Part shown: positions 1,689-61,223 of the stretch, in pieces
How the letters are laid out: each line of letters begins with the position of its first letter
Numbering within the stretch: position 1 is the stretch's first letter
Sequence record: NC_048047.1
Reading direction: 5' to 3' (one strand)
DNA: 64,000 bases
Position numbers and translations under genes: made by a program
The notes under the pieces: generated by a model
The model's input: only the letters and a program-made list of their open reading frames with translations
Database searches by the model: none
What the model was told of the DNA's origin: nothing

Positions 1689-2006
1689 CACTCGCCGCTC
1701 GATATAGGCGCGCATCGCCGCCGAGGAGGCATAGCGCCATGTCCAGGGCGCCTTGTCAGGATCAGCGCCGTTGAACTGGCAAAGCCACAGATAGCCGGCC
1801 TCGGTGTGCGGGAACTGCTCGGCGGCGGCCGAAAACCCGGTCAAGCGGAAACAAGCCGCGACCTCGGCGGGTGAGAGGTTTGGCGGACGCACGTGGGTCA
1901 GCTTGACCTTCACCTCCTGCGGGGCAGTCGGGGGTGGCGGCTCGACCTCGTAGCCGGCCTTGCGCAGCAGCTTGATCGCCGCTGCGATTTCGGGTGACGG
2001 CTTCAT
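1674..2006 (-). CDS. Hypothetical protein
   Basis: ATG 2006 (MKPSPEIAAAIK...) overlaps the stop of the Rmf-like ORF (ATGA). Confidence 0.7.
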   Translation of the reverse strand: MKPSPEIAAAIKLLRKAGYEVEPPPPTAPQEVKVKLTHVRPPNLSPAEVAACFRLTGFSAAAEQFPHTEAGYLWLCQFNGADPDKAPWTWRYASSAAMRAYIERRVLENS

Positions 2007-2140
2007 CCCTGTACGCTCTTTTGGAAGTCCCAGCCATCCAACCATGTCCAGCGATCCAGGCTCAGGAGCCCGTACGGGCATGATGAGCGAGGGCGGCCAC
2101 GGGCGTAGGCTAGTTGCCCTTCTTGATAGGGGTCCATCAT
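2003..2140 (-). CDS. Rmf/CrpP-like small protein (45 aa)
   Basis: Own translation MMDPYQEGQLAYARGRPRSSCPYGLLSLDRWTWLDGWDFQKSVQG matches the Rmf pattern Y..G..A...G.....CPY......R..WL.GW; coupled on both sides. Confidence 0.7.
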   Translation of the reverse strand: MMDPYQEGQLAYARGRPRSSCPYGLLSLDRWTWLDGWDFQKSVQG

Positions 2141-2547
2141 TTCCTCGATTTGGCTATGTGCGTTTCCAGGGCTTCGTCATAGCCGGTCAGCTTATAGCCG
2201 GCTTCGGCGTAGGTCCGGGCATAGGACACCGCACAACGGTCGGTGCAGAACAGTTCGTCCTTGTAGCTCTCCCCGTCCCACACCGTGACCTTGTCGATAT
2301 AATCGCCTCCGGTCTCTCGCCGGTAGGTGTCGTGATGTGGGTTGTGCGGGTCGTACCGGCGCCACGAGACCGATACGATGACGCCGTTGATGAGGTCCTG
2401 GACCTCGGCCTTGCTGCGTGGATAGGTAGAGCCGAACCGGCGGCTATCCCCGCTCGCCATCTGGCCGAAGTAGTGGTAGTCGGTCGCCTTGCCGATCGGC
2501 TTGAAACAGCAGCGGCAGAGCGGGGCGATGGTTGCCTTGAACAGCAT
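2137..2547 (-). CDS. Zn-finger-like hypothetical (CRCC ... WDGESY ... FCTDRCA)
   Basis: Cys motifs; same domain as the C-terminus of 17085..17936. Confidence 0.75.
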   Translation of the reverse strand: MLFKATIAPLCRCCFKPIGKATDYHYFGQMASGDSRRFGSTYPRSKAEVQDLINGVIVSVSWRRYDPHNPHHDTYRRETGGDYIDKVTVWDGESYKDELFCTDRCAVSYARTYAEAGYKLTGYDEALETHIAKSRK

Positions 2548-12214: not shown

Positions 12215-12546
12215 TGTCCCGTGTCGTCCACTGGTACGCCATCAAGCCCTGGTCCGGCCCTGAAGCAGATTATCGGATCGCCGATGATCTGGCCGCAGGC
12301 ACCAGGGTCCTGACCGCTTGCATGCGGGAGGGAGCACCGGTGATCTATGTCGAGAAGGTCACGGCCAAGGGGCGGACCTCCGACATGTTCAAGAACCGCA
12401 TCGACGCCTTCTACGTGGAGACCGGCAAGGAGTTCGAAGAAGTCCTGCCACCGGGCGAACCGTTCCGCTACGTCGACACCATTCAGATCGATCGTCCGTC
12501 GGGGCTCTACTTCTATCATGTCTACGCACGGGTCCTGGGTCTGTGA
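12214..12546 (+). CDS. Hypothetical protein
   Basis: ATG 12214 coupled (MSRVVHWYAIKPW...). Confidence 0.7.
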   Translation: MSRVVHWYAIKPWSGPEADYRIADDLAAGTRVLTACMREGAPVIYVEKVTAKGRTSDMFKNRIDAFYVETGKEFEEVLPPGEPFRYVDTIQIDRPSGLYFYHVYARVLGL

Positions 12547-12855: not shown

Positions 12856-13656
12856 ATGCTCTCGACCCCCGCGATCAAAGAGGCCTACGAATTCGCCTGT
12901 CAGGCGCATGCGGGGCAAATGTACGGCGACCAGACGTACGACGTCCACTTCCTTTCGGTCGCCCAGACCCTGGTCGAGCACGGCTATGACACCGACGACT
13001 GGATCATCATGGGCCTGACCCACGATGTGGTCGAGGACACCCCGGTCACCAAGGGTCAATTGGCCGACCGTTATGGCGACAATGTGGCCGAAGGCGTGTG
13101 GACGGTTTCGGGCTTTGGCGCCACCCGTGCGATCCGCAACGGCTGCATTGCCCTGAAGCTCTTGCGCCGGCCGCAGTACGCGCCTTTGAAGTGCGCCGAT
13201 CGAATCAGAAACGTTCGATCCGCCGCCGAGAAGAAGTCCATCCGCCATGCCGAACTCTATCTGGGCGAGGCCGGCGAATTCGATCCGCTGGTCAAGGGCC
13301 ACGTCCTGGCCTCGATGTTCCGCGACTTGCAAGACGCCTACCATGAAGCCGAACTCATGCTTCAGGCCGAGGGCGTCCAACGGAAGACTGGGCCGGCGAT
13401 GGAAGTCCACCCCGACGCCGCCTTCGACGATCAGGCGATCGACGCCTTTGCCGAGGCGCTGAAGGTCAAGATGGCCCAGTCTCGCGCCAAGGGCCGGGGA
13501 GGATGGAGCCGGCCCGAAGAGGTCTCCCAGGCCGCCCTGGTCGAGGCGTTGCATCATCACGTGAGCAAAGGTGATCCCCGTGACGTGGCGCTGTTCGCCA
13601 TGATGCTCAACTACCATGGCTGGTCGACGGCCATGACGCTTTCCGAGGCTGCATGA
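12856..13656 (+). CDS. Mesh1/small alarmone hydrolase-like HD protein fused to a helical phage domain
   Basis: AHAGQ, Y..H, THDVVEDT, KCADRIRN; C-terminal HPD..DD.AID.FA...K.KM..SRAKGRGGW...HV.KGDP.DVA..AMML. Confidence 0.8.
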   Translation: MLSTPAIKEAYEFACQAHAGQMYGDQTYDVHFLSVAQTLVEHGYDTDDWIIMGLTHDVVEDTPVTKGQLADRYGDNVAEGVWTVSGFGATRAIRNGCIALKLLRRPQYAPLKCADRIRNVRSAAEKKSIRHAELYLGEAGEFDPLVKGHVLASMFRDLQDAYHEAELMLQAEGVQRKTGPAMEVHPDAAFDDQAIDAFAEALKVKMAQSRAKGRGGWSRPEEVSQAALVEALHHHVSKGDPRDVALFAMMLNYHGWSTAMTLSEAA

Positions 13657-18974: not shown

Positions 18975-19243
18975 GCGTCGATCTCCTGGTTCTCGACGAA
19001 CATTACGATGTCGTCGTCAGCCATGACACGGTCTGGGTCAACGACGCCGTCGGCATGTGCATTGGCCGCTTCGGGCCGCGCGGCATCGACGTCCATGCCA
19101 CGGCCCAGGACCAGCTAGAGGGCGCGCACTGCTTGGCCTGCGCCAAGCGCACCGCCGACGTCGATCAGGACTGGTCGTTCTTCGTCGACAACATGCTCAC
19201 CCATCACCGCATCAAGCTCACCGACAAGGACCGCCCACGATGA
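18971..19243 (+). CDS. Hypothetical protein
   Basis: ATGA coupling. Confidence 0.7.
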   Translation: MSVDLLVLDEHYDVVVSHDTVWVNDAVGMCIGRFGPRGIDVHATAQDQLEGAHCLACAKRTADVDQDWSFFVDNMLTHHRIKLTDKDRPR

Positions 19244-19614
19244 CCCTGCACAAGAACATCGCCGACGCGGTCGGCGCCAATGTCTCGCAACTCATGCTGC
19301 GCACCGAATTCGAGAGCGCGGCCAACGACATTCTGGCGCTGCTGGGGCCGCATGCCGAACTCGCCTGGGCCATCCATGCCGTCGAGCAGACCCTGCCCGG
19401 CTGGGGCTGGCTGACTCGGGCCGACGCGGAGCAAGGCTACTTCGCCAACATCATGACCCCCGACTTCGCGGGCGGCGTGGCGCTCGTCGACGGCTTCGTC
19501 CTGGACTTCAGCGTGGGGGAACGGTTCATGGCCTATGCCAAAACCCCTGGTGAGGCCCTTCTGAACTCCCTGGGACAGGTCACCGCTCGATTGAAGAAGA
19601 CCGCCGATGCCTAG
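19240..19614 (+). CDS. Hypothetical protein
   Basis: ATGA coupling at 19240. Confidence 0.7.
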   Translation: MTLHKNIADAVGANVSQLMLRTEFESAANDILALLGPHAELAWAIHAVEQTLPGWGWLTRADAEQGYFANIMTPDFAGGVALVDGFVLDFSVGERFMAYAKTPGEALLNSLGQVTARLKKTADA

Positions 19615-20791
19615 CCGTATCCTGATCCCCTCCGACCTGCTGCGTCTGCGTCAGGGCTTCCAGAGCATCGACCGCGACGTCCGCTTCGTCGGCGGCTGCG
19701 TGCGCGACACCTTGTTCGGCCTCGTGCCCAAGGACATTGATCTCTGCACCGACGCCTCGATCAACGAGATGATCCTGATCGCCAGCCGTCTGGGGATCAC
19801 CGTGATCCCCACCGGTGCCGAGCACGGCACCCTGACGTTCAAGCTCGACAGCGGCCTCTACGAGATCACCTGCCTGCGTGAGGAGACCAAGCACGACGGC
19901 CGCCGCGCCGAGTGCCGCTTTGGTCGGGATTGGGACAAGGACCTCTCGCGCCGCGACCTTACCATCAATGCCATGGCCATGGACTTCGACGGCGTGATCT
20001 ACGACCCGTTCGGCGGCCAGAAGGACCTGGAGCACGGCATCGTTCGCTTCGTGGGCGAGGCCGCCGATCGGATGCGGGAGGACTACCTGCGCATCCTGCG
20101 GTGGCTGCGCTTCCACGGACGCTATCGCGGCGCGCCAATCGACTTCCACGCCATGCTCGCCGCCCAGGACGTTCGCGAGGGACTTTCGAAGCGGGACGTC
20201 GATGGATCGTTCCTGATCTCGCGTGAGCGGGTCTGGGCCGAGATGGCCAAAATCTTCGCCGGCCCCAGCGTCGGCTACATCCTTCACTACCTCGTCTACA
20301 TGCGCCTGGACGAGCACATCGACATGAAGGGTCCCTATAACGTCAACCGCCTGGAGTGGGTGGCCAAGAAGACCGACGACTACATCGTCCGCCTTGTGGC
20401 GTTCATGACGTCCGTGGCCCAGGTCGAGGCGCTGGCCGAGGCCTGGAAGTGGAGCGTTGACGAGCGCAAACGCGCCGTTTTCCTGGCCAAGGAGGCCTAT
20501 GGACGTCGTACGCGCCTGGACTGGTTGGTGCTGATGGGTATGGCGTCCAAGGAATGGGCCGAGGACATCGCCCTCATCCGCGAGGACGAGGAGACCTTTG
20601 AGACCCTGCGTGCCTGGAATCCGCCCAGCTTCCCGCTGCGTGGCCAGGATTTGCTGGACATAGGCTTCACGCCGGGTCCCGCGATCGGCTACCATCTGGA
20701 TGAACTTCGGGTCGCCTGGGCGCATGCCGACGGCCTCCTCACCAAAGAGCAACTTCTTCAAGGCGTCACGCCGGAGACCAATTATGGCTGA
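19607..20791 (+). CDS. cca: Class II tRNA nucleotidyltransferase (CCA-adding enzyme / poly(A) polymerase family)
   Basis: VGGCVRD...DID, RRDLTINAMA, DPFGG..DL, EDYLRILR.LRF. Confidence 0.9.
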   Translation: MPSRILIPSDLLRLRQGFQSIDRDVRFVGGCVRDTLFGLVPKDIDLCTDASINEMILIASRLGITVIPTGAEHGTLTFKLDSGLYEITCLREETKHDGRRAECRFGRDWDKDLSRRDLTINAMAMDFDGVIYDPFGGQKDLEHGIVRFVGEAADRMREDYLRILRWLRFHGRYRGAPIDFHAMLAAQDVREGLSKRDVDGSFLISRERVWAEMAKIFAGPSVGYILHYLVYMRLDEHIDMKGPYNVNRLEWVAKKTDDYIVRLVAFMTSVAQVEALAEAWKWSVDERKRAVFLAKEAYGRRTRLDWLVLMGMASKEWAEDIALIREDEETFETLRAWNPPSFPLRGQDLLDIGFTPGPAIGYHLDELRVAWAHADGLLTKEQLLQGVTPETNYG

Positions 20792-21110
20792 TCTGAGTCC
20801 CATCCTGATCCAGGAAATCACCCGGATCATCAACACCAAGTCGCCGCTGGCGGACAAGCCTCAAGGCGTCAGCGGGGTGTCCTATGTCGGCGGCACCCTG
20901 CCCGACCGCATCACCCACATCATCGCCTTCCATGTGGAGGGCTGGGGGCTACATCGTTGGGCCTCGTTCGCCTATGTGATCGCTGGCCCCGATCCGCTCA
21001 ACATGGAGGTCAGGAACATCGTCTATCGCGAGGACCTGACCATGCCCGGCGCCGATCCCTGGGACGACGAGGACCTGACCGCCCTGGCCGCCAAGCTCCT
21101 CTATGTCTGA
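20784..21110 (+). CDS. Hypothetical protein
   Basis: ATG 20784 after GGAG. Confidence 0.7.
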   Translation: MADLSPILIQEITRIINTKSPLADKPQGVSGVSYVGGTLPDRITHIIAFHVEGWGLHRWASFAYVIAGPDPLNMEVRNIVYREDLTMPGADPWDDEDLTALAAKLLYV

Positions 21111-21348
21111 GCGCGTCCTGGTCGCCGCGATCCATGGCGACCGCAACCGCTATTACGCGGAGCCCTGGTGCGACCCGTGGAAAACCTGGGCTTTCCGATG
21201 GAAGGTCTACCGCCACGATCGCCTGCCCTGTGACGGGCGCATGCGCCAGTATGTGGGCGAAGCCGCCTCACTGATGGAGGCCAGGACTGTGATCGCCCGG
21301 AACATCCGCAACATGCGACGGCGAGCGCGTCTGCGAGAAAACAGTTGA
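21103..21348 (+). CDS. Hypothetical protein
   Basis: Coupled; stop codon supplied by the promoter motif. Confidence 0.65.
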   Translation: MSERVLVAAIHGDRNRYYAEPWCDPWKTWAFRWKVYRHDRLPCDGRMRQYVGEAASLMEARTVIARNIRNMRRRARLRENS

Positions 21349-21350
21349 CA
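21333..21350 (+). promoter_or_regulatory. Class I promoter (GCGAGAAAACAGTTGACA)
   Basis: Repeat motif. Confidence 0.75.
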
Positions 21351-21400
21351 AGCGCCCGTATCCTCCCCAAGGATGCGGGCGTTTTCATTTGGAGGATCGC

Positions 21401-21658
21401 ATGACCCGCATACCGCCGCCGCTGAATGGCGAAAAGACCCATCCGCTGTCGGCCGTCGCCCTGAGCACGCTGCGGAGCATCAGCCGTTTCCCCTGCCCGA
21501 CCCAGGAGATCAATCACGGTCTGATCAACCGCTACCAGCGCGAGGGACTGATCGAACTCTACGAGGACGTCAGCCCGTACAAGACCCACAAGGGCAAGAA
21601 GATCAGCTTCGTACGCATCTCGCCGGCGGGGCAGGCCATCCTGCAAGAAACCGGTTGA
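21401..21658 (+). CDS. Small wHTH-like protein in a single-gene cassette
   Basis: GGAGG RBS; L...GLIE...VRISPAG; bracketed by two class I promoters. Confidence 0.65.
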   Translation: MTRIPPPLNGEKTHPLSAVALSTLRSISRFPCPTQEINHGLINRYQREGLIELYEDVSPYKTHKGKKISFVRISPAGQAILQETG

Positions 21659-21660
21659 CA
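21644..21660 (+). promoter_or_regulatory. Class I promoter (CAAGAAACCGGTTGACA)
   Basis: Repeat motif, N16, CCTAGAT. Confidence 0.8.
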
Positions 21661-21709
21661 TCTGATCGATAGGTGTCCTAGATATCGATCAACAGCCTCG
21701 GAGGCCCTT

Positions 21710-22141
21710 ATGCAAGTCAACGCCAGCAACCTGCGCAACGCCCTGGTCGTCCTCAAGGAGGAAGACCCCAATCTGGCCAAGCTGCTCGATCCGATCATCG
21801 ACGATCGCGTCACCCTGCGCCAGTTCGCCGACATCCTGAACACCGTCTACGAGGCCGGATACAACCGCCCGACACTGTCGTCGTTCACGGTCACCGGCTC
21901 CAAGCACATCGGCTTCCCGATGGATATGCTGCGCAAGGGCGACTGCTGGCCGGCCTCGACCGACGATGCCAACCTGATCGAGAAGCTCATCGAGCGCAAC
22001 GACGGCTACATCGCCCGGCTGCCCAAGAACGTCACGGTCCGCCTGACGACCTGCGCCAGCGAGTACGCCCAGGACAACGCCGCCCACCGCTGGGCCTCGT
22101 TCGGCTGGACCGTTTCGGCCCTGGAGCAGGACGCCGCGTGA
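21710..22141 (+). CDS. Hypothetical protein
   Basis: GGAGG RBS. Confidence 0.75.
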   Translation: MQVNASNLRNALVVLKEEDPNLAKLLDPIIDDRVTLRQFADILNTVYEAGYNRPTLSSFTVTGSKHIGFPMDMLRKGDCWPASTDDANLIEKLIERNDGYIARLPKNVTVRLTTCASEYAQDNAAHRWASFGWTVSALEQDAA

Positions 22142-22470
22142 GCCAGACCAAAAACCCTCGACGCGACAAGGTCTACGCCGTCCTCTATGACCGCCATTGC
22201 GCGCCGGCCGAGCCGGTAATGGTCTGGGTCATCTGGGAAGGCCATGGCGGTGCTGTGATCGCCGACTGGAAGGCCGAGGACAATACCACGAAGGTTCGCC
22301 TCGTGAGCCTCGAAAACCTTTACTACAAGGGCGCCTTCGAGGACGTGTTGAAGGGTTGGGCGGCGCCGTCTGTCCTGTTCAACCAATTCGTCAGGAAGAC
22401 CGAGGCCGCCAAGACCGCCCGCGAAGAACTCGACGCCGAAGTTCGTCGCCTCCTGGCGCCGGGCAAATAG
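22138..22470 (+). CDS. Hypothetical protein
   Basis: GTGA coupling. Confidence 0.7.
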   Translation: MSQTKNPRRDKVYAVLYDRHCAPAEPVMVWVIWEGHGGAVIADWKAEDNTTKVRLVSLENLYYKGAFEDVLKGWAAPSVLFNQFVRKTEAAKTAREELDAEVRRLLAPGK

Positions 22471-22482
22471 CAGGAGACCCTG

Positions 22483-22902
22483 ATGCGCAAAGCCCTGACC
22501 AAGGCCGTGACGATCGCCGGCCGTCGCTTCAACCTGATCGACATCTTCGTCAAGCGGGTGGACCTGTCGATGCTGCACGATCGTCCAACGGTCGACACGG
22601 CTGTCGGCGTACGCATCCTGGGCCTGGGCTTCAACATCCAGGCCTATCAGAGCACGCGATCCTTCACCCTGGCCCTGGGCCATTCCTGGTTGCTGGATGT
22701 TCAAATCGGCGGGACGGCGCCAGCCGTCTCGTCGCCGCTGAACACGGGGGCTCCCGATTTCAACCCGCCGGGCGTTCGGTTCTGCATGACCATCCTGGGC
22801 TCGATCACCAAGACGCGCTGGACCTGGGAGGGCTTCGAGGTCACCAATGTCCTCTACCCCGGACATGGCCGCGTGATGCGTTGGAGCCACCAGTTTGGCT
22901 GA
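22483..22902 (+). CDS. Hypothetical protein
   Basis: GGAG RBS. Confidence 0.7.
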   Translation: MRKALTKAVTIAGRRFNLIDIFVKRVDLSMLHDRPTVDTAVGVRILGLGFNIQAYQSTRSFTLALGHSWLLDVQIGGTAPAVSSPLNTGAPDFNPPGVRFCMTILGSITKTRWTWEGFEVTNVLYPGHGRVMRWSHQFG

Positions 22903-24100
22903 TCTAGACCTCTACAACGAACTATGGATTCGGACGGAACGTGAAGAGTCGTTCCGGTACATGAACGACGCTGTTCGACGCGCCCGCGCCTTTACGCTCG
23001 ATGACGACATGGCAAGCGTGCTGAGTCGATTGGCAGCATCCGCCGACGATCGGATGCTTCTGCGTTATAAGCAGGCAGCGCGGCTTCCCTATCCTGAAAT
23101 GTGGTTGGAAGCCAGCTACGAGCACGCCTTCGCGGACAACGCAGCGTCACGGCACGTATTTGGCCGCCCAACGAGGGTTGGATGGCTAATTCGTCAAGGA
23201 GACGTGAGGTATGGACCTGACGTGATCCAAGCTGTTCGGATTGCAAAAACCGATGGAGGCGGGCCTTTGTCTGGCGGCGATCAACTCGCGTCAGTCTATC
23301 CTATCAGAATGATTTGGCGCCCGGAAGGGAAGATCGAGTATCTTAATCACTCCAACTACGATGCTCACGAAGGCCCCGTTGGTCGCTATCTCCGAGAGAT
23401 TTGTGACGCTGAAAGAGACTTCAACTCCAAATCGGCTTCCATGCGTCTTTGCTGGACGCCCAACGATCCAGGCGTCGAGCGTGTCCAAGGACTGGATGCG
23501 CAGGCGCTGCTCGAACGCGCCAGCCGTGAGACGGATAAGCTGCCTTTGGCTGGCCACGCAGTCTTGACGACGGAGAATCGTACGTTATCCGGCTTATTGG
23601 AGCGTGTTGGCGCACGGAGTGTGGGTGAAGGCATCAACGAGATCATGGGCGCCGCGCTCTATGATCAAACCGGTGATCTGGGCCTGATCGTCACGGCCCT
23701 GTCCCTGATCAACGAAATTCCCGTCCGTTTCGTCGAGCACCAGCCGCGCGGGTCACTACGGGCCGGCGGTCGGATGCGCCCCTACATGCGCTCCTCCATC
23801 GTCTCGATCGAAGTCCCTGCCACCCGTCGCCGGATCAAGGACATCGAGAAGACGATCAAGCAGAAGGTCGAGGCCGCCAAACGCGCCCGCCACGAGGTGC
23901 GCGGCCATTGGATGACCGCTGACAAGCCGCCGCGCGTCGAGCAGACCCGCGAGACCAAGCGCTGGGAGACCTACTTCGATCGCGAAGGCCGTATCCGCTG
24001 GCGGACCTGGGTCGACAACCACATGCGCGGCAGCGCCGAGGTTGGCTACGTCCAGCAGGTCTATGAGGTGACCGAGAACCCGCGCCGTTCGAACTACTAG
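22895..24100 (+). CDS. Conserved hypothetical protein with C-terminal H.VRGHW motif
   Basis: 401 aa; RHEVRGHW...WV.NHMRG. Confidence 0.75.
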   Translation: MADLDLYNELWIRTEREESFRYMNDAVRRARAFTLDDDMASVLSRLAASADDRMLLRYKQAARLPYPEMWLEASYEHAFADNAASRHVFGRPTRVGWLIRQGDVRYGPDVIQAVRIAKTDGGGPLSGGDQLASVYPIRMIWRPEGKIEYLNHSNYDAHEGPVGRYLREICDAERDFNSKSASMRLCWTPNDPGVERVQGLDAQALLERASRETDKLPLAGHAVLTTENRTLSGLLERVGARSVGEGINEIMGAALYDQTGDLGLIVTALSLINEIPVRFVEHQPRGSLRAGGRMRPYMRSSIVSIEVPATRRRIKDIEKTIKQKVEAAKRARHEVRGHWMTADKPPRVEQTRETKRWETYFDREGRIRWRTWVDNHMRGSAEVGYVQQVYEVTENPRRSNY

Positions 24101-24113
24101 AAAACGGTTGACA
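24097..24113 (+). promoter_or_regulatory. Class I promoter (CTAGAAAACGGTTGACA)
   Basis: Repeat motif, N16, CTAAGA. Confidence 0.8.
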
Positions 24114-24165
24114 CAGTTTGCAGGCGCCTCTAAGAGGGAGCAACTGAACCAGGAAAGGATTCGCT

Positions 24166-24699
24166 TTGACCGACGAGACCGAGACCGAAACCGAGCACGC
24201 CCTGTACTACGCCCTTGTCGCCGGCGCGGCCGAGTATGACGGGCTTCCGGCTGTGCTCCTGGCGGTCTGGGCCGAGAACGACAAGACCGTCACCGGCCGC
24301 GTCGTCGAGCAAATCTACACCTACAACAACAACATCACTCACGTGACCAAGCCCGACCAGAAGTTCGCCTTCATGGGCGGACGGCAGGGCACCGGCCTCT
24401 ATCGGGCCTCGAAGAACAAGCTGCTGGCCACCTTCGCCGATAAGGCGACGGCCGAGGATGCGACCTTCAAGGCCAAGACCATCGCCTCGGTCCAGGTCGA
24501 CGAATTTGGCGAGAGCGCCAAAATCAAGGACATCCTCCACCGCGCCGGCGAACTGGAGCAGCAGGCCCGGAAGCTGCGCGAGGAAGTAAGGCCGCTCCGT
24601 GCCGCCGCCTGGAAAGAACGCTTCCAGCAAGTCCTCGGGACGCTGCGCGACGCGGGCGCCTCTCATGTCTGGGCGCCGCCTGAGGACGTCACGGCATGA
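24166..24699 (+). CDS. Hypothetical protein
   Basis: TTG after AGGA. Confidence 0.75.
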   Translation: MTDETETETEHALYYALVAGAAEYDGLPAVLLAVWAENDKTVTGRVVEQIYTYNNNITHVTKPDQKFAFMGGRQGTGLYRASKNKLLATFADKATAEDATFKAKTIASVQVDEFGESAKIKDILHRAGELEQQARKLREEVRPLRAAAWKERFQQVLGTLRDAGASHVWAPPEDVTA

Positions 24700-24887: not shown

Positions 24888-24889
24888 AC

Positions 24890-25525: not shown

Positions 25526-25535
25526 GAGACTGGCC

Positions 25536-25703: not shown

Positions 25704-25707
25704 CAAA

Positions 25708-25735: not shown

Positions 25736-25740
25736 AAATT

Positions 25741-25760: not shown

Positions 25761-25812
25761 GCCTTTCCTCGCGTAGCCTATGTTGCGTCCATAGCCGCTT
25801 GAGGAGAGCCCC

Positions 25813-38792: not shown

Positions 38793-39428
38793 ATGAGCCT
38801 GCTTGAAATCCTAGCCACTGTCGTCACCGTCGCCTGCGTCCTGCTGGCCGTCAAACGGTCGACTTGGCAGTACCCTATCGGCATCGTCGGCACGATCCTG
38901 TTCTTCTTCGTCTTCCTGGGCGCCAAGCTCTATGCGAGCGCCATGCTCCAGGTCTTCTTCACCGGCGTGCAGGTCTACGGCTGGTGGTACTGGATCAAGG
39001 GCTACAAGGGCAAGGCGCCGCCGATCACGTCCTGGTCGGCGCCCGTGACTGGGCTTGTGATCCTGGCGGGCCTAGCCCTGGGCATCACCTTGAGCGATCT
39101 GCTGTCGGCCTTCACCGACGCCAAGGTCGCCAAGGCCGACTCGATCATCTTTGGCCTTTCCATGGCCGCGCAGTTTCTGCTCGACCGCAAGAAGCTGGAA
39201 AACTGGCTGGTCTGGGCAGGCGTCAACGCCATCTCGATCTACGTCTACGGCAGCCAGGGGCTGGCCCTGACGACCGTCCTCTACACCTTCCTGTTCTTCA
39301 ATGCCTTCTACGGCTACTACGAGTGGCACAAGGCCAAGCGCGCCCAACGCATCGTCTGGGAAGCCGACGCCAAGAAGTACCCGCCGGCGCCCGTGGTCGA
39401 GACCAAGCCAGGGGACCTCATCCTTTGA
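38793..39428 (+). CDS. pnuC: Nicotinamide riboside transporter PnuC
   Basis: W.YPIG, LQVFF...YGWW.W, DS.I..LS..AQ.L..RKK.ENW..W...N, YGY..W. Confidence 0.9.
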   Translation: MSLLEILATVVTVACVLLAVKRSTWQYPIGIVGTILFFFVFLGAKLYASAMLQVFFTGVQVYGWWYWIKGYKGKAPPITSWSAPVTGLVILAGLALGITLSDLLSAFTDAKVAKADSIIFGLSMAAQFLLDRKKLENWLVWAGVNAISIYVYGSQGLALTTVLYTFLFFNAFYGYYEWHKAKRAQRIVWEADAKKYPPAPVVETKPGDLIL

Positions 39429-40465
39429 ACTACGCACAGCAAATCCTTCCCCATCCGTTCGAGGCCAAGCCCGAGAAGGGCTTCGTCCTGGGCAAGTTCA
39501 TGCCGCCGTCGGAGGGCCATCGGTTCCTCTGCGAGTTCGCGCGTGAATACTGCCAGAAGCTGACCATCCTGGTCTGCTCGATGCCCGACGAGCCGATCGA
39601 CGGCTTCTTGCGCTTCCAGTGGATGCGCGAGATGTTCCCCGACTGCAATGTCGTCTGGTGCCAGGAGGTCCTGCCCCAGGAACCGGTGGGCGAGGACCCG
39701 CAGTTCTGGGAGACCTGGGCGGGCGTCATCCAGAAGTACGGCAGCCGCTATGGCGAGCCCTACAAGCCCGACGTCGTCTTCGCCTCCGAGCCCTATGGCC
39801 ACAAGCTGGCCGCCAGCGTCGGCGCCCGGTTCGTGCCCTGCGACATCTCGCGGACGGCGCGCGACATCTCGGCCACCCGCATCCGCGCCCAGCCCCTGGC
39901 CAACTGGTCCTACATCCCCAACGTCGTGCGCCCGCACTTCGTCAAGCGGGTGACCATGTTTGGCCCCGAGAGCAGCGGCAAGTCGACCTTGGCCTGCGCC
40001 TTGGCCAAGGTCTACGACACTATCGTCGTGCCCGAGTACGGGCGCACCTACACCGAGCAATTCGGGACCGATGTTGGCGCCGAAGACCTGATCCGCATCG
40101 TCCAGGGTCACCGCGCCAGTGTCACAGCAGGCAAGCGGCAGGCCAACCGCATCCTGTTCGAGGACACCGATCCGATCATGAGCGCGGTCTGGTCCGATAT
40201 GCTGGGCGTGCCTCGTGACCCGTGGTTCGACAGCTTCGACGACAAGGCCGACCTCTACCTGCTCTGTGGCGTCGACATCCCCTGGGTGGACGACGGCACT
40301 CGCTACTTCTCGTCGGAGGCTGATCGGCAGCGCTTCTATGGGCTGTGCAAGCTGGAACTCGAACGGCGCGGCTGCGCCTATGTGGAGATCAGCGGTTCGA
40401 TGCTGGACAGACGCATCACCGCCATGACCGCAATCAACAAGACCTTCGGGATCGAAGCGCCATGA
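39425..40465 (+). CDS. nadR: NadR-type NMN adenylyltransferase / nicotinamide riboside kinase (no HTH)
   Basis: TTG 39425; GKFMPPSEGH, ISATRIR, Walker A GPESSGKS, PEYGR, FEDTD, PWVDDG.R. Confidence 0.9.
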   Translation: MNYAQQILPHPFEAKPEKGFVLGKFMPPSEGHRFLCEFAREYCQKLTILVCSMPDEPIDGFLRFQWMREMFPDCNVVWCQEVLPQEPVGEDPQFWETWAGVIQKYGSRYGEPYKPDVVFASEPYGHKLAASVGARFVPCDISRTARDISATRIRAQPLANWSYIPNVVRPHFVKRVTMFGPESSGKSTLACALAKVYDTIVVPEYGRTYTEQFGTDVGAEDLIRIVQGHRASVTAGKRQANRILFEDTDPIMSAVWSDMLGVPRDPWFDSFDDKADLYLLCGVDIPWVDDGTRYFSSEADRQRFYGLCKLELERRGCAYVEISGSMLDRRITAMTAINKTFGIEAP

Positions 40466-40854
40466 TCAACTTCACTTACCTGGGCATCCCCTACACCTCC
40501 AAGAACCCCAACCCTGTCGAGGCCGCTGCTGAGCGCGCCGCTCGCATGGTCGAGTTCTGGAAGGCCTGCGCCATGCTGATCGACCAGGGCGAAAACATCG
40601 TCTCGCCGATGACCCTGGAGCCAGCCCTGACCGTGGTTCCCGATCTGCCCTACGAATGGCCGTTCTGGCAGCACTATTCCCGGAACATGCTGGCCTTCTG
40701 CTCCAAGCTGGTCGTCCTTCAACTGGACGGCTGGGATGTCTCCACGGGCATCGCCGGCGAGGTCGAGGAGGCCCAGCGTCTTGGGCTGGAAATCCACTAT
40801 CTGGCGCCGCAGGAAGTCGAGGCGTGGAGACAGGGGCGATCCCGTGGCGGCTAA
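40462..40854 (+). CDS. DUF1937 / nucleoside 2-deoxyribosyltransferase-like fold protein
   Basis: ATG 40462; YLGIPY, IVSP, W..W, LVVLQLDGWDVSTGIAGEVEEA..LG. Confidence 0.7.
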   Translation: MINFTYLGIPYTSKNPNPVEAAAERAARMVEFWKACAMLIDQGENIVSPMTLEPALTVVPDLPYEWPFWQHYSRNMLAFCSKLVVLQLDGWDVSTGIAGEVEEAQRLGLEIHYLAPQEVEAWRQGRSRGG

Positions 40855-43406: not shown

Positions 43407-43880
43407 ATGACCTGCATCGTCTACCGCGACGGCGTCCTGGTGGCCGATAGCTGGGTGCTCGACGTCTGGACCAAGATCGGCCGGTTCCCCAAGATCGCCA
43501 AACGCGAGGGGGCGCACGGTACGATCCTGCTGGCCGCGTCGGGTGACAGTGGCTACTCCAAGAATTTCCTGGACTGGGGTCGCGGCCCCGGCCTCCTGGA
43601 CTGGATCAAGAAGGGCGACGAGGTTCACGAGGGCATCCCCAACCTGGGCGAAGGCGATCGCACCGCCAACGGCATGCTGATCATGCCCGACGGCTCGTGC
43701 ATCCGTTTTGACCCAGGCTCCTTGCCCTACGTGATCAAGGCGCCGTTCTACGCCATGGGTTCGGGGTGCTGGGTCGCGCTGGGCGCCCTGGAGGCTGGAG
43801 CCACGGCCGAGGAAGCCGTCCTGGCCGCCGAGAAATGGGACGTAGGCACGAACGGCCCGCTCATCACACTGAGGCACTGA
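43407..43880 (+). CDS. Ntn-hydrolase, proteasome-beta/HslV-like
   Basis: M-T-C-I-V N-terminus, ADS, K in FPKI, AMGSG...ALGA, D..T.G. Confidence 0.7.
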   Translation: MTCIVYRDGVLVADSWVLDVWTKIGRFPKIAKREGAHGTILLAASGDSGYSKNFLDWGRGPGLLDWIKKGDEVHEGIPNLGEGDRTANGMLIMPDGSCIRFDPGSLPYVIKAPFYAMGSGCWVALGALEAGATAEEAVLAAEKWDVGTNGPLITLRH

Positions 43881-45270: not shown

Positions 45271-45996
45271 ATGGCCGACTACTTCCAGCCGATCGTCTTC
45301 TGGGGCGCGCTCTATGACGCCTGGATGACCCCCAAGTCCGAGGGCGGTCTGGGTCCAGAGAACGCCCGTGAGGTGCTCGGGATCGAGGCCTTTCACCACT
45401 ATGGGGTGACGACGCACGAGGCGGTCGCCGGCACGGCGGCTGGCGAAGTGATCTATGGTCTCGTTCGCTCGACGTGGCACAAGCCACGTGAGGATGGCGG
45501 CGGCCTGCACGACGACGACCATACCTGGGACTTCAAGGACCCCTCCGCGCCAGGAGGACGCGGGCGCGTCCAAATCTACAAGACCGAGAAGGCCGGATAC
45601 TGGGCGTTCAATCCGTACGGTGTCGCCGATGGCCCTGGTGCGCGCTGGTTCGATCAGGAGTATCGCGTTCCCACCGTTGGTGAGTTGCTCGCCGAGGCCG
45701 CCTATTGCGAGGCCAAGATCGTCGAGCATGGCAACGAGATGCTGCGCTGTCGCGATACCGTGCGCGGGCGCAAGAGCATCAAGAACCTCAAGAGCCTGAT
45801 CGAGGACCGCGAATGGCGTCGCAAGATGGTACTTAAGCGCTGGCCTCAGACCAGCATCTTCCTGGACGCCCCGCTGACGGCGCCGGCGCACCTGCCGGCC
45901 GATCGCCTAGACATCACCAAGTTCTCGGCCCAGCGCCTGGAGAGCTATCCCATCATCCGCGCTCTCCTGGGAGACCACCCGTGCGCTACTACCTAG
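45271..45996 (+). CDS. Hypothetical protein
   Basis: ATG 45271. Confidence 0.7.
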   Translation: MADYFQPIVFWGALYDAWMTPKSEGGLGPENAREVLGIEAFHHYGVTTHEAVAGTAAGEVIYGLVRSTWHKPREDGGGLHDDDHTWDFKDPSAPGGRGRVQIYKTEKAGYWAFNPYGVADGPGARWFDQEYRVPTVGELLAEAAYCEAKIVEHGNEMLRCRDTVRGRKSIKNLKSLIEDREWRRKMVLKRWPQTSIFLDAPLTAPAHLPADRLDITKFSAQRLESYPIIRALLGDHPCATT

Positions 45997-46430
45997 ACTG
46001 TGAATTCGACGGGCATGGTGGCCCTCTGATCTCCCTGGCCCTGTACCGCAAGGACGGCCGCCACCTCTATCTGGTGCGCGACGACGCTGAATTCATGATT
46101 CAGGACCTGTGGGTGCGCCAGAACGTCTTTCCCATCCTGCGAAGCGTTCCGTCCAACATCGGCATCGATGTCGTACCCATCGGAGAGTTCGGCCAGAAGA
46201 TCGCCGAGTTCTTCCAGGACGAGACCCCCTACATCGTCTGTGATTGGCCCATGGACGCCAGCCTGTTCTCCCAGACCCTGATGATCCGGCCCGATCGCAT
46301 GGCGACACTGCCCAACTACGTGGTCCAGGTTTTCCGCATCGACGCCTACGAGGGCACGCCATTCAAGAACGCCGTTCGGCACAACGCCGCCTGGGATGCC
46401 ATCGTCCTCTGCGACGCCATCGAACCGTGA
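45981..46430 (+). CDS. DEDDh 3'-5' exonuclease, Rv2179c/RNase AS-like
   Basis: YYLDCEF, LISLAL, WV..NV.P.L, DW..D, HNA.WDA. Confidence 0.75.
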   Translation: MRYYLDCEFDGHGGPLISLALYRKDGRHLYLVRDDAEFMIQDLWVRQNVFPILRSVPSNIGIDVVPIGEFGQKIAEFFQDETPYIVCDWPMDASLFSQTLMIRPDRMATLPNYVVQVFRIDAYEGTPFKNAVRHNAAWDAIVLCDAIEP

Positions 46431-48487: not shown

Positions 48488-49250
48488 CCTCTCCGACGCC
48501 TTCGTAGAGCGCTATGGCGCCGACCTCTTCGACGACTTGTGTGAAGGCGTCCTGTCACCTGAGGCCTATCCGCACGTGCGGGTCACCGAAACCGAAAGGC
48601 ACAATGCCTGCAACCACACCTATCGTGGCGAGATCGTCCGCGAGGGCCAGGAGACGGTGTATTACTCCCTCGATAGTGGGGATTGGAACGGGACCTACCT
48701 GCGCTACTTCAGCGAGGAAGGCCCGGAGGACTACGAGCGCGGCTATCGCGTCTATGTCTTCGATCTCAATCCCAGTCGGCTGACCGTACCCGTCGCTGAG
48801 GTCCGTCTGAAGGTTTCGATCTGGCTCAACAACTACCTGTCGGTCACCATGGCCAACGGCGAGTTCAAGGACAAGGAGCGCGGCTACGGCTATGATTCCA
48901 CCTTCGCCCCCGGTGTCGTGACTGACAAGCACTATCGCGACTACGCCGCCTCCCGCGATCTGATCCCCGCTTCCGCCTGGATACCCGAGACCATCGAGCG
49001 GGTGTCCACGACCGAATTCAACAACGCCCGGATCGAATACGAGAAGGCGGCCGACATCCGCTACCGCAAGCAATTCCGCGACAAGGTCGAGCCGCAGCAC
49101 GAAGAGGCCTTGAGCCAACGTGCCGGCGAGTTCTTCCGGCTCCTGGCGATCCGGTTCGCCAGCGAGGGGCGCGAGAACGCCGCCGCTCTGGCCAAGGACG
49201 TTTCTAAGGCTTGGCTGGATGCTCTGGTCGATTCACCAAGTTCTGCTTGA
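48480..49250 (+). CDS. Hypothetical protein
   Basis: 256 aa; GAGG RBS. Confidence 0.75.
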   Translation: MSDLSDAFVERYGADLFDDLCEGVLSPEAYPHVRVTETERHNACNHTYRGEIVREGQETVYYSLDSGDWNGTYLRYFSEEGPEDYERGYRVYVFDLNPSRLTVPVAEVRLKVSIWLNNYLSVTMANGEFKDKERGYGYDSTFAPGVVTDKHYRDYAASRDLIPASAWIPETIERVSTTEFNNARIEYEKAADIRYRKQFRDKVEPQHEEALSQRAGEFFRLLAIRFASEGRENAAALAKDVSKAWLDALVDSPSSA

Positions 49251-50403: not shown

Positions 50404-50859
50404 ATGGCCAACGACCAGAACCGCGATTTCACCTGCTGCTACCTGCTGATGCGTGTCGACCTTAAGTCGCTGTGCGCCGGCAAGGCGATCGCCCAGGCCC
50501 ACCACGCCGGGCTTCAGTTGGAGCATGACGCCAAGGACTGGACCTCCGAGCAGCAGGCGATCTTCGCCCGCTATCGCAAGGAGGCCCGTGGCTTCGGGAC
50601 GACCATGACCCTGGCTGTCACCGAGCAGGAGATGCGCGCGGCGATGATTCGCGCTCGCGACCTGGGCTACCTGCATGGCGTGGTCCACGATCCTTCCTAT
50701 CCGCTCTATGATGGCGGGTTCCTGCACCACATCCCGCTGGACACCTGCGCCTACGTCTTCGGCGAGAAGCGCTTCGTCGAGAACGCGGTGATAGGCCTGG
50801 ACCTCCTGCGTCGCGCCAGTCTCTGGCAGCCGGTGTCCAAAGTGCCGGCCGATGGCTGA
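50404..50859 (+). CDS. Divergent Pth2-like (peptidyl-tRNA hydrolase type 2 fold) protein
   Basis: LLMRVDL....GKAIAQAHHA, TMTLAV, VHDP, TCAYVFG, LDLL. Confidence 0.65.
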   Translation: MANDQNRDFTCCYLLMRVDLKSLCAGKAIAQAHHAGLQLEHDAKDWTSEQQAIFARYRKEARGFGTTMTLAVTEQEMRAAMIRARDLGYLHGVVHDPSYPLYDGGFLHHIPLDTCAYVFGEKRFVENAVIGLDLLRRASLWQPVSKVPADG

Positions 50860-58278: not shown

Positions 58279-58335
58279 AGCTCCTTCTAAGGCCCGATAA
58301 CGCGAGCCTCGACGACGAAGAAAGGCCCGCCGCCC

Positions 58336-60495
58336 ATGATGGAAGACAGCCCCCTTTGGAAAGCCATTGGTCTCTGGGAAGAGATCACCGGCGTGGCTGT
58401 GCCCAATGCCGACGGCTCGTTCAAGGGCACGCTGGGCGAATACGACATTCGCCAGACCTATATCGAACTGCGCGAGACCCTGGAGCTTGATCCCACCGAG
58501 GTCACGACGAACCTGATCTTCAACACGTTCGTCAAGCAGTGGATGGCCAAGCAGCAAAACAGCCTGCTCGACCTCTTCAACGACCCGGTCAAGTACGAGC
58601 AGAAGCTGGAAAAGCCGCGTCTGCTGATGAGCATCCTCAACCGCCCCGAGATCATCGAGGCGCGTGACGCGTTCCTGGCGTCGTTGAACGAACTGACCGT
58701 CCGGTACGGCGCCGATCAGCGCGCTGATCTCCAGAAGACCCTGGTACAGTACGACCTGCTCGCCTTCCTGCGCCGCGACGCGCTGCGGGCCTCCGCGCGC
58801 CTGCGCATCCACCAGTTCACCTCTGGCGCCCCAGAGGCTGCTGACTACAAGCCCGTCTTCGTCAAGACCGTCCACCAGTGGTGGAACATCAACTCGCTGC
58901 TCGAAGCAGCCCTGCGCATGCCTTCGGGCATCTCTCTGAACCTGATCCGCGACCCGGACATGTTCCAGTCGTTCTTTTGCTTCTGCATCCGCAATGGCGG
59001 CAACCTCTTCATCCTCACCGACGCGCCCGAGAACGCCCATCCCCTGCAAGGGTTGTTCCGTCGCAAGCCAGAACGCGCCTACGAGGCGCGCGTCAGCAAG
59101 TCGTGGTTCCCCTATGACCTGATGAACCTGGAGTGGGATGAGGAAACCGAACGCTATTTCCAGGCGGAGTCGACGGTCACCGCCCTGGCGACCTACCAGA
59201 ACCAGCACCTGCCGCTGAAGCCCTTCAACGAGCTTGACCCGGCCGAATTCCTGTGGTGCTCGATGATGCTCGACCTGATCGTCGAGAAGTTCTGGCGCCA
59301 GAACTATCAGCACCCCTCGCTGTCCTATACCGGCGAAATGCTGATCATCGAAAATCGCCTGGAAACCAGCGCCGCGAGCGCCGGCCTGCCCGTGGCCGCA
59401 TACCAGCCGCTGAACCTGCCGGCGCTGTCCGCCGCCGACATGAAGACCGACCGTCTCGACGAGGCCGCGATCGGCCTCTCCTACCACAAGCCCAACCTTT
59501 GGTTGGAGGAGCGGTTTGGGCACAAGGTCCAGGACGCGGCCCTAAACCTCGTGGCTGACACCAGCCAACTGATCCTGATGGACAAGTCGACGGGGGAGAT
59601 CACCACCGAAGGCCGCGAGTTCATCAAGAAGTACGAGGCCATTCCGTCGGTGTTCACCGACCGGAAGGCTCAGATGATGGCCGGCCGCGTCAAGATGCAG
59701 GTCCTCAATCCCACGCGGTTTGGCACCCGCGAGGAACTGGACAACGACCGCAAGTTCATCGCCCGCTACAACTACGCCACCGAAATCGGGCGCATGGCCC
59801 ATGAGGAGTTCGCGGCGCGCAAGGACGCGATCAAGGCGTGGTGGAAGAAGGCGGTCGAGAAGAACCGCGACAACCTCCTGGCCTACGCCGCCGCCGAGAG
59901 CGTCTGGGTCTGGTCGGACATGAAGGGCTCGGGCGACACCTTCGACCATATGCGCTCGGGCGCTGGGCCGCGCTATCGCGTCGACCTGGGCCAAGGCGAT
60001 CAAGGCGGCTTCCGCAGCCGCCGCTACAAGGACGCCCACAAGTTCACCCACCGCGTCCCGATGGAGAAGTTCGACTACTCCACCCTGGGCTTTGAGTGGG
60101 TCAATCTCGGCGACTATGAGCACAAGCGTCGCTATCTCTGCGCGATCAACGAGACCAAGGCCTCGTTCATGCAGTGCTTCCACCCGACCAATGCCGACGA
60201 ACTGGCGATCCTGGCCGGCTGCACCGTCGAGGAGCTTCCTGACGTGCTTCAGCACTGGACCCTGGCTGATCCCTACGACGGCAATCACCTCCTGAGCCGG
60301 ATCGATCCGCTCAACTGGAACGTCAAGAACCCGTGGCTGAGTCTGAGCTTCCGTGTCGGCATCCCGTTGTCGATGCGCGGCGCGGCCAAGATCGCACCGA
60401 TGGCCCGTAAGCCGGCGATCCCCAACATCATCCCGGACGATCTGATCGTTGACGATCGCCCCTCCTTCCCTTCGCCTTTCAGGACCGAACAATGA
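58336..60495 (+). CDS. Large hypothetical protein (719 aa)
   Basis: Longest ORF in the window, strong GC3 bias; no motif recognised. Confidence 0.85.
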   Translation: MMEDSPLWKAIGLWEEITGVAVPNADGSFKGTLGEYDIRQTYIELRETLELDPTEVTTNLIFNTFVKQWMAKQQNSLLDLFNDPVKYEQKLEKPRLLMSILNRPEIIEARDAFLASLNELTVRYGADQRADLQKTLVQYDLLAFLRRDALRASARLRIHQFTSGAPEAADYKPVFVKTVHQWWNINSLLEAALRMPSGISLNLIRDPDMFQSFFCFCIRNGGNLFILTDAPENAHPLQGLFRRKPERAYEARVSKSWFPYDLMNLEWDEETERYFQAESTVTALATYQNQHLPLKPFNELDPAEFLWCSMMLDLIVEKFWRQNYQHPSLSYTGEMLIIENRLETSAASAGLPVAAYQPLNLPALSAADMKTDRLDEAAIGLSYHKPNLWLEERFGHKVQDAALNLVADTSQLILMDKSTGEITTEGREFIKKYEAIPSVFTDRKAQMMAGRVKMQVLNPTRFGTREELDNDRKFIARYNYATEIGRMAHEEFAARKDAIKAWWKKAVEKNRDNLLAYAAAESVWVWSDMKGSGDTFDHMRSGAGPRYRVDLGQGDQGGFRSRRYKDAHKFTHRVPMEKFDYSTLGFEWVNLGDYEHKRRYLCAINETKASFMQCFHPTNADELAILAGCTVEELPDVLQHWTLADPYDGNHLLSRIDPLNWNVKNPWLSLSFRVGIPLSMRGAAKIAPMARKPAIPNIIPDDLIVDDRPSFPSPFRTEQ

Positions 60496-61223
60496 GCGTC
60501 TACACCCAGCTTCCCGCCAATGGCGTCCCGATCCGCTGTCTGGGTTCGGACAAGGACTATATCGAGCGGGCGCGCGTCTGGGCCGTCGAGAACACCAAGT
60601 TCACGGTCGCCCAGATCAGGCCCAAGGAAAACCACGGCAACGTCGCCGAGAACATCATGGTCTTCGAGACTTTCGAGCAGAAGCGGGATTTCGCCCGGAA
60701 GTGGCTGGTCGGCGTTCACTTCGCGCCGCTCGACAAGATTCCCTGGGAACGAGCCTATCCTGACCAACCCCTGTTCAGTGACGAGACCTGGAGCGCCCCG
60801 CCGGTGCGCCACGAATATTCCGAACTGGTGATGTACTCGATCATCAGCGAGGAAGCCCTGAAGGCCATGAAGGGCAATCGCGGCAAGCTGGTCTCCCAGG
60901 GCGGGCATGCCTACCTGCACACGTGGTGGGACTCCGAGCGGCGCTTCTCCAGCGCGGCCTACGCGTACCGCAACTCCAACGCGGCCGTGAAGGTGGCGCT
61001 TAGGCCGATGCAAGACCTTGCTCTGCCCGACATCCTGGTGGCCGACACCGAAGACCAGCTTTCGGCCCTCTACGACATCTTCCATCCGATCTGTGGGTGT
61101 ACCCTGACCCGCGACGCCGCCCGGACCGTCTTCACCGAACCGACGGTGACCTTCCTGGGTGTGGGGCCGATCTACAAGACCCTCTTCAACGAACTGGCGC
61201 CGGGGCTGCGTCCACTCCTTTAG
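60492..61223 (+). CDS. pth2: Peptidyl-tRNA hydrolase type 2 (Pth2) fused to an unknown N-terminal domain
   Basis: MKGNRGKLVSQGGHA, VKVAL, DTEDQL, RDAARTVF.EPTVTFLGVGP, LRPL. Confidence 0.8.
   Translation: MSVYTQLPANGVPIRCLGSDKDYIERARVWAVENTKFTVAQIRPKENHGNVAENIMVFETFEQKRDFARKWLVGVHFAPLDKIPWERAYPDQPLFSDETWSAPPVRHEYSELVMYSIISEEALKAMKGNRGKLVSQGGHAYLHTWWDSERRFSSAAYAYRNSNAAVKVALRPMQDLALPDILVADTEDQLSALYDIFHPICGCTLTRDAARTVFTEPTVTFLGVGPIYKTLFNELAPGLRPLL

Follow-up and report, generated by a model that had tools for sequence, protein, structure and literature searches.

Caulobacter phage CcrBL9 (MH588546.1/NC_048047.1; genus Bertelyvirus, 322,272 bp, host C. vibrioides CB15) carries seven genes of RNA- and translation-related families within the 64,000-nucleotide stretch analysed here (bases 186001–250000 of the record; hereafter the window, to which positions refer unless the record is named). 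They encode a CCA-adding enzyme, a Thg1-like protein (TLP), two Pth2-family proteins (Pth2-a and Pth2-b), a small alarmone hydrolase, a DEDDh exonuclease and a small protein of the Rmf/CrpP family, the last from an unannotated open reading frame (ORF). With modest confidence, we favour the reading that these genes are separately inherited parts of a phage repertoire for the upkeep of translation, and not one system. Such a repertoire would also take in, outside the window, 28 transfer RNA (tRNA) genes, a permuted transfer-messenger RNA (tmRNA), three RNA ligases and a ligase-associated nucleotidyltransferase. Its core would be an old collinear block (CCA-adding enzyme, then TLP, then Pth2-a), inherited alongside an expanded set of tRNAs, tRNA-His among them. 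These three genes would look after the ends and the recycling of the phage's tRNAs, for which a routine need can be demonstrated; resistance to defences that target tRNA is plausible as a benefit of such upkeep, but not demonstrated as its purpose. Gene identities, conserved catalytic residues, folds, distributions, gene order and the tRNA genes without CCA are observations, and all activities and substrates given below are inferred from homology.

A preliminary description of this DNA had grouped the seven genes as a dispersed toolkit for tRNA-end repair and translation rescue. The genes lie where it placed them, with all seven ORFs intact and coordinates matching, and each family assignment holds at the level of the family. 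The single system that it entertained does not stand: the seven genes span 58 kb on two strands, with no contiguity or operon, and show at least four phyletic patterns. A subset, namely the CCA-adding enzyme, TLP and Pth2-a (hereafter the trio), does behave as a module. No link to tRNA ends can be demonstrated for the exonuclease or for the Rmf/CrpP ORF.

Gene distributions were taken from tblastn searches of each protein against a phage collection (the best 60 records per query). The trio is found in nine out of nine Bertelyvirus genomes, in both Colossusvirus genomes (2/2), in all seven Brevundimonas jumbo phages and also in roseophages MD18 and DSS3_MAL1; no member of the trio has a match at threshold in the phiCbK group (205–230 kb) or in Brevundimonas phage Bajun. 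All Caulobacter and Brevundimonas phage records of the subfamily (Bertelyvirus, Colossusvirus, the Brevundimonas jumbo phages and the phiCbK group) contain both the exonuclease and the HD domain of the alarmone hydrolase. The Pth2-b domain is found in Bertelyvirus, in the phiCbK group and, among the Brevundimonas jumbo phages, in Gurke and Kikimora only, with no match in Colossusvirus. The Rmf/CrpP ORF and the tmRNA are confined to Bertelyvirus, with no match in Colossusvirus, the Brevundimonas jumbo phages or the phiCbK group. Coincidence of these patterns is limited to the trio, so that independent gain and loss, which had been named as the outcome that would speak against a shared function, is what we see for the seven genes together but not for the CCA-adding enzyme, TLP and Pth2-a.

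The order of the trio is also constant, on one strand, in Bertelyvirus, Colossusvirus and the Brevundimonas jumbo phages: the three genes lie at 205.6, 221.2 and 236.4 kb in CcrBL9 (likewise in CcrSC and C1), at 208.6, 215.9 and 218.1 kb in CcrColossus, and at 114.6, 111.5 and 94.6 kb in Bambus. Since the gap between the CCA-adding enzyme and TLP is only 2–3 kb in the Bambus group, and that between TLP and Pth2-a 1.5 kb in Colossusvirus, the dispersal of the trio in CcrBL9 looks like the stretched form of a tighter ancestral block, which in Bertelyvirus would have been drawn out to 30 kb by inserted genes. These linkages support a functional relation but could also stem from the shared ancestry of these phages. 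All seven genes are conserved and syntenic in every member of the genus (51–95% amino-acid identity), and their stable positions are therefore the behaviour of stable genes rather than of a fast-turnover anti-defence island.

The first member of the block, gp394 (19607–20791, + strand), is a strong sequence-based call as a class II tRNA nucleotidyltransferase (CCA-adding enzyme), in which neither Pfam nor NCBIfam finds an HD phosphohydrolase domain. Its PolyA_pol head domain (PF01743) scores 96 bits against a Pfam cut-off of 23, and residues 11–387 of 394 align to the human mitochondrial CCA-adding enzyme (PDB: 4x4w, E-value 2e-57), ahead of the bacterial enzymes; the head-domain stretches Gly-Gly-x-Val-Arg-Asp and Asp-Ile-Asp match up with those of human TRNT1. 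CCA-adding enzymes in PDB are matched at 2e-57 to 6e-28 and poly(A) polymerases at 1e-13 or weaker, and gp394 has the neck, body and tail regions that separate the former from the latter. The best curated NCBIfam equivalog model, PRK13299, gives 157 bits only (cut-off 290), which makes gp394 a divergent member of the family.

The tRNA genes of CcrBL9, all 28 of which lie outside the window, provide the evidence for a routine need. CCA is encoded in 26 of them; the two exceptions, tRNA-His(GTG) and tRNA-Val(GAC), abut tRNA-Ala (record 82349–82496) and tRNA-Ile (record 89129–89277), respectively, and in each case one C is all that separates the discriminator from the adjoining tRNA. These two tRNAs need C and A to be added post-transcriptionally, and the CCA-adding enzyme therefore has a routine substrate. 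CCA is likewise not encoded in the tRNA-His gene of phage C1. By homology, gp394 would complete and repair 3′ CCA ends, and would be required for the phage tRNA-His and tRNA-Val(GAC).

The second member, gp364 (35152–36000, + strand), is an equally strong call, again from sequence, as a TLP of the 3′–5′ nucleotidyl transferase family: its Thg1 domain (PF04446) scores 104 bits (Pfam cut-off 29), and PHROG 4717 is matched with 239 bits. The best solved relative is the TLP of Bacillus thuringiensis (PDB: 4kgk, E-value 7e-24), and true Thg1 proteins, including those of Candida and human, are matched at 4e-8 to 2e-5; on this difference we place gp364 in the TLP branch and not with the G-1-adding Thg1 of the eukaryotic type. 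The metal-binding carboxylates (the Asp of Arg-x-Asp-Gly and a Ser-Asp-Glu stretch) align to those of 4kgk. Unlike the Bacillus protein, gp364 is encoded by a phage, meets a host tRNA-His without G-1, and co-occurs with phage tRNA-His genes of varied acceptor ends. It may extend or repair tRNA 5′ ends by templated 3′–5′ addition, most likely on the phage tRNA-His.

Host tRNA-His has no G-1, and has G1-U72 and A73 (PMC3064791). Among the phages, none of six tRNA-His genes encodes G-1, and the acceptor ends vary among all lineages having a TLP: G1·U72, discriminator G and no encoded CCA in Bertelyvirus; U1 unpaired opposite U72, discriminator A and an encoded CCA in Colossusvirus (CcrColossus 12283–12357 and CcrPW 584–658, positions in the extracted stretches L010 and L013, respectively); and C1-G72 with an encoded CCA in both Kikimora (discriminator C) and Bambus (discriminator A). 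Colossusvirus tRNA-His thus retains the host-type U72 and A73 despite the unpaired top of its acceptor stem, and a C73 able to template G-1 is found among the six genes only in that of Kikimora. For the first six phiCbK-like phages, a tRNA-His has been reported in Colossus only (PMC3556154), and by tblastn a TLP is likewise present in Colossus and in none of the other five. The tRNA cluster of phiCbK, read by coordinates, has no tRNA-His, and blastn with the CcrBL9 tRNA cluster gives no match in the phiCbK group. Because Colossus alone of the six has both genes, and the phiCbK cluster lacks tRNA-His, we conclude that the TLP tracks the phage's own tRNA-His. One may speculate further that the TLP is a dedicated partner of this tRNA, rebuilding or editing its 5′ end in hosts without the G-1 identity rule, an idea that we consider rather improbable. 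If it were true, TLP and CCA-adding enzyme would make up a phage-borne pathway of tRNA end editing; to our knowledge, 5′ end editing of such a kind is otherwise found only in the mitochondria of protists.

The third member, Pth2-a (gp331; 50404–50859, + strand), and its counterpart outside the block, Pth2-b (gp311; 60492–61223, + strand), are both calls of moderate strength. gp331 scores 25.2 bits with the Pfam family PTH2, narrowly above the cut-off of 23, and the profile of its own family finds six solved Pth2 proteins in PDB (best E-value 2e-8). Its AlphaFold model (predicted local distance difference test score, pLDDT, 87) has Pth2 proteins as 12 out of 12 top Foldseek matches, with template-modelling (TM) scores, normalised to the target, of 0.70–0.84; Lys27 and Asp96, which we take to be active-site residues from what is known of archaeal Pth2, are invariant across the alignment of 41 family members. 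In gp311 the Pth2 domain covers residues about 110–243 (PTH2: 27.1 bits over residues 126–239, with the same cut-off of 23), and its Gly-Lys, Gly-His-Ala and Arg-Asp-Ala stretches align, in a sequence match, to those of the solved Pth2 2zv3. Neither protein reaches the curated Pth2 equivalog TIGR00283 (14.9 bits for gp331 and 23.8 bits for gp311, cut-off 82). The N-terminal ∼105 residues of gp311 (60492–60818) are found in CcrBL9 only, with no counterpart in other phage records, and the Pth2-b of CcrSC is a stand-alone protein of 136 amino acids; the extension may be an insertion specific to CcrBL9, or the start codon may be mis-set. By homology, the Pth2 pair would free tRNA from peptidyl-tRNA or N-blocked aminoacyl-tRNA. 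Upstream of Pth2-b lies gp312 (58336–60495; 719 amino acids), whose stop overlaps the start of gp311, a coupling also kept in CcrSC; gp312 has no match in Pfam, NCBIfam, PHROGs, PADLOC or the PDB sequences.

The alarmone hydrolase, gp408 (12856–13656, + strand), has a RelA/SpoT-type HD domain in residues 7–123, a call of moderate strength. Pfam HD_4 scores 33.3 bits (cut-off 27.2), and NCBIfam spoT_relA matches the N-terminal part only. In PDB the same residues match several small alarmone hydrolases as well as the Rel/RelA hydrolase domain, and the His-Asp and Glu-Asp positions coincide (the His-Asp-x-x-Glu-Asp stretch lines up with that of Rel). No synthetase domain is found by Pfam or NCBIfam. 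The protein had been described as Mesh1-like; a small alarmone hydrolase of the RelA/SpoT HD family it appears to be, but Mesh1 itself is not among the matches. The C-terminal part (residues ∼170–260; 13336–13656) has matches in six PHROG families, all of unknown function, and none in Pfam, and is joined to the HD domain in Bertelyvirus only. The closest described proteins are PaSpo (Salmonella phage SSU5) and PbcSpo (PVP-SE1), which are likewise stand-alone phage RelA/SpoT-type HD hydrolases; these two have been shown to neutralise toxSAS toxins, whereas gp408 is a putative hydrolase with an extra C-terminal domain in Bertelyvirus. It would hydrolyse 3′-pyrophosphates, namely those of (p)ppGpp or (p)ppApp and possibly those of pyrophosphorylated CCA ends.

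For gp343 (45981–46430, + strand; annotated 'Rnase H' in the record), the call as an RNase AS-like DEDDh 3′–5′ exonuclease comes from profile and predicted fold, as there is no Pfam match. The residues D6, E8, D92, H134 and D139 are invariant in a family of 42 members, whose profile has RNase AS as its sole match in PDB (2e-10); the structural model (pLDDT 96) has RNase AS as its top seven Foldseek matches, with Pol III epsilon and RNase T ranking lower. gp343 shares the DEDDh residues, fold (TM 0.66–0.71) and size of RNase AS (Rv2179c of Mycobacterium tuberculosis), but similarity in sequence is confined to the first 84 residues and the RNase AS equivalog NF033638 is matched at 24 bits only (cut-off 200), so that we regard gp343 as a relative of RNase AS and not as an orthologue. 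It would trim 3′ tails of RNA. The family is also found in many Pseudomonas and Ralstonia phages.

The Rmf/CrpP ORF (2003–2140, – strand; 45 amino acids) was found by listing short ORFs and is missing from the record; it occupies exactly the space left between gp431 and gp430, with an overlap of 4 nt on each side (gp431 and a + strand ORF were also tested for likeness to Rmf, with no match). It scores 32.3 bits with the NCBIfam Rmf/CrpP model NF041886 (cut-off 28) and 27.4 bits with Pfam RMF, just under the gathering threshold of 27.9, which the CcrSC orthologue passes (32.1 bits) and that of C1 does not (26.1 bits). The top three PDB matches are RMF (E-values 0.015–0.16). Both equivalog models of NCBIfam stay below their cut-offs (RMF: 24.3 vs 40; phage Rmf-like: 26.9 vs 40). 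The 'Rmf-like peptide' of the preliminary description is therefore better described as a member of the Rmf/CrpP family than as RMF proper, which is known as a gammaproteobacterial protein. With RMF and with the Rmf/CrpP fold proteins of phages and integrative conjugative elements (NF041886, NF041887) it shares its size and an aligned Cys-Pro-Tyr and Trp-Leu-x-Gly-Trp stretch; it differs from RMF in falling under the RMF and Rmf_like_phage cut-offs and in having an alphaproteobacterial host. The ORF is kept in nine out of nine Bertelyvirus genomes and, at the sensitivity of our search, nowhere else among 50,697 phage records; codon differences from CcrSC are 13 synonymous and eight non-synonymous. 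A word-based protein search with this ORF finds the CcrSC orthologue only, and an exhaustive search finds 48 representatives, mostly of 45–70 amino acids and some with repeated domains. The peptide may bind ribosomes.

Several further genes elsewhere in the genome would belong to the same repertoire. A permuted tmRNA (two-piece type) lies at 149054–149359 of the record, called by both Rfam (tmRNA_permuted, 73 bits, cut-off 47) and ARAGORN and not included in the record annotation; its tag reading frame terminates in Lys-Leu-Ala-Ala. It is kept at 85–98% identity in all nine Bertelyviruses, in nearly all of which it is unannotated, and tRNAs are the sole RNAs reported in the 2012 phiCbK paper. 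The RNA ligases are gp479 (Rnl1 type, with genes for a SLOG-domain protein and an ATP-dependent ligase after it) and gp226 and gp508 (both of the Rnl2 type), the last adjoining the nucleotidyltransferase gp509. One candidate in the tRNA cluster, gp554 (192 residues; record 79662–80240), was set aside: its name, 'histidyl tRNA synthetase', comes from PHROG 4806 alone, with no Pfam match.

The closest published precedent is the jumbo-phage repertoire for RNA repair and ribosome rescue described by Iyer, Anantharaman, Krishnan, Burroughs and Aravind in 2021 (PMC7824862, sections 3.4.8–3.4.9), which comprises phage tRNAs, Rnl1, Rnl2 and RtcB ligases with a nucleotidyltransferase, a CCA-adding enzyme, Thg1, PTH2 (acting on stalled peptidyl-tRNA) and an HD alarmone phosphodiesterase, and was interpreted as a counter to host attacks on translation. 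CcrBL9 resembles it in components, in the dispersed non-operonic layout and in the purpose proposed, and goes beyond it in having the permuted tmRNA and the Rmf/CrpP peptide; the collinear block of CCA-adding enzyme, TLP and Pth2-a tied to the phage tRNA-His, and the two CCA-less tRNA genes, are further features shown here. Phage T4 provides another parallel: its Pnkp and Rnl1 repair the tRNA-Lys cut by PrrC, a nuclease of abortive infection. An Rnl1-type ligase is encoded by CcrBL9 too (gp479), but the window genes would act on tRNA termini and not on the anticodon loop, and a polynucleotide kinase/phosphatase is neither annotated in the genome parts whose products were examined nor detected in the window.

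Several observations weigh against tRNA upkeep as the reason for these genes. Related phages may share gene content and gene order through common descent and not for a functional reason. CcrColossus and Kikimora have the CCA-adding enzyme, and all 24 tRNA genes examined in each of them encode CCA; maturation therefore cannot be the sole role of the enzyme in these phages, and we rejected maturation as the whole explanation of its presence, the remaining role likely being the repair of worn or attacked ends. As a bacterium, the host is expected to have a CCA-adding enzyme and a Pth of its own, and the duplication of these functions by the phage suggests that the host enzymes are overwhelmed or attacked. 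The histidyl-tRNA synthetase (HisRS) of the host makes no use of G-1 but recognises the anticodon and U72, and an added G-1 cuts its kcat/Km five-fold (PMC3064791). Finally, neutralisation of toxSAS toxins has been published for other phage alarmone hydrolases (PMC7229694).

An alternative is that the genes exist to undo abortive-infection attacks on tRNA, also proposed by Iyer et al. (2021), which we regard as possible, though unlikely as the dedicated purpose of the set. The hydrolase would strip the pyrophosphate placed by toxSAS/CapRel toxins off CCA ends, the CCA-adding enzyme would rebuild clipped tails, tRNAs that had been cut or shortened would be repaired by TLP together with the RNA ligases, and Pth2 would clear stalled peptidyl-tRNA. 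The biochemical logic fits published work: tRNA CCA ends pyrophosphorylated by toxSAS are restored by small alarmone hydrolases, which take the pyrophosphate off again (Kurata et al. 2021, bioRxiv 10.1101/2021.04.30.441581), each of five tested toxSAS toxins is neutralised by the hydrolases of SSU5 and PVP-SE1, through which phages were suggested to bypass such defences (Jimmy et al. 2020, PMC7229694), and cleavage of tRNA tails is now known as an immune mechanism (PMC12851939). The retention of the CCA-adding enzyme in CcrColossus and Kikimora points the same way, as does the phiCbK record, where 6.3 kb of one strand (131534–137876) contain the hydrolase, Pth2-b and an RtcB-type 'tRNA splicing ligase' (this stretch adjoins NAD-salvage genes, a NadM-type enzyme and NAMPT). 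On the other side, the genes are not variable but stable, syntenic and conserved across genera, and they follow at least four phyletic patterns; in gp394 there is no HD domain of the kind that heals ends in the E. coli-type repair enzyme, and none of the seven proteins matches a PADLOC defence-system model. The proposal of the preliminary description, that the seven genes together could counter tRNA-targeting abortive infection, is thus plausible, sound in its biochemistry and supported in part; it is not new, the general idea being found in Iyer et al. (2021) and Jimmy et al. (2020).

It is also conceivable, and in our judgement distinctly unlikely, that part of the set serves a takeover of host physiology unrelated to tRNA ends, with the hydrolase removing (p)ppGpp or (p)ppApp and thereby keeping the stringent response from slowing down the infected cell, the Rmf/CrpP peptide modulating ribosomes, and the exonuclease taking part in general RNA or DNA turnover. 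gp408 is nearest to the (p)ppGpp hydrolase domains of the long Rel/RelA enzymes, and alarmone accumulation has been discussed as a barrier to phages (PMC7229694). Moreover, both the hydrolase and the exonuclease belong to the core of the subfamily, including phages that lack the CCA-adding enzyme or TLP, and the exonuclease family extends to the Pseudomonas and Ralstonia phages mentioned above. Against this, the peptide falls under the RMF equivalog cut-off, and the hydrolase of phiCbK is found near an RNA ligase and Pth2-b. That the seven are a chance assortment of accessory genes, unrelated or in decay and by now functionless, is very improbable: they are scattered over 58 kb among ∼120 mostly unknown genes, and some matches are weak (the RNase AS and Pth2 equivalogs fall far under their cut-offs), but all seven are intact and have been conserved in every genus member, their catalytic residues are invariant within families, and the small ORF has an excess of synonymous changes relative to CcrSC.

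By Pfam, the remainder of the window adds no further RNA or translation families. About 130 genes are annotated in it, the majority as 'hypothetical', and a Pfam scan of the other 120 annotated proteins finds NAD-salvage, acyltransferase, ferritin-like and DUF families only. ARAGORN finds no tRNA gene in the window, and no RNA family reaches the Rfam gathering thresholds there. G+C content is 61–65% along the whole length, and positions 19000–37000 are 100% identical to CcrBL9 by megablast, as is the window as a whole to bases 186001–250000 of the record. A NAD-salvage trio (38793–40854) encodes a PnuC-type nicotinamide mononucleotide (NMN) transporter, a NadR-like NMN adenylyltransferase with AAA_28, and a DUF4406/nucleoside 2-deoxyribosyltransferase-like protein; NAMPT, a NadM-type enzyme and NAD synthetase are encoded outside the window, and the phage salvage genes could rebuild NAD during infection. 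An HslV-family peptidase (43407–43880) has a second copy, gp108 (record 48751–49191). The NUDIX hydrolase gp385 (24890–25525), with about 75% DNA identity across Bertelyvirus, has a nucleotide, ADP-ribose or an RNA cap as possible substrates. A stretch of 718 bases (22903–23620) is without an annotated gene; a TTG-started ORF of 401 amino acids (22895–24100) crosses it into gp388 and has no PHROG match.

The tmRNA and the Rmf/CrpP ORF are additions to the public records of these phages. More generally, large phages carry much of what keeps translation running, which may serve the upkeep of their own tRNA pool or act as a shield against tRNA-targeting immunity. CcrBL9 and its relatives form a well-ordered natural series for telling these two apart: one group is without CCA-adding enzyme, TLP, Pth2-a and tRNA-His, and three groups have all four, with the same order. 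Their hosts read tRNA-His without G-1. In such a series, the roles of the phage 3′–5′ polymerase and of the CCA-adding enzyme would be directly readable from the tRNA ends of infected cells.

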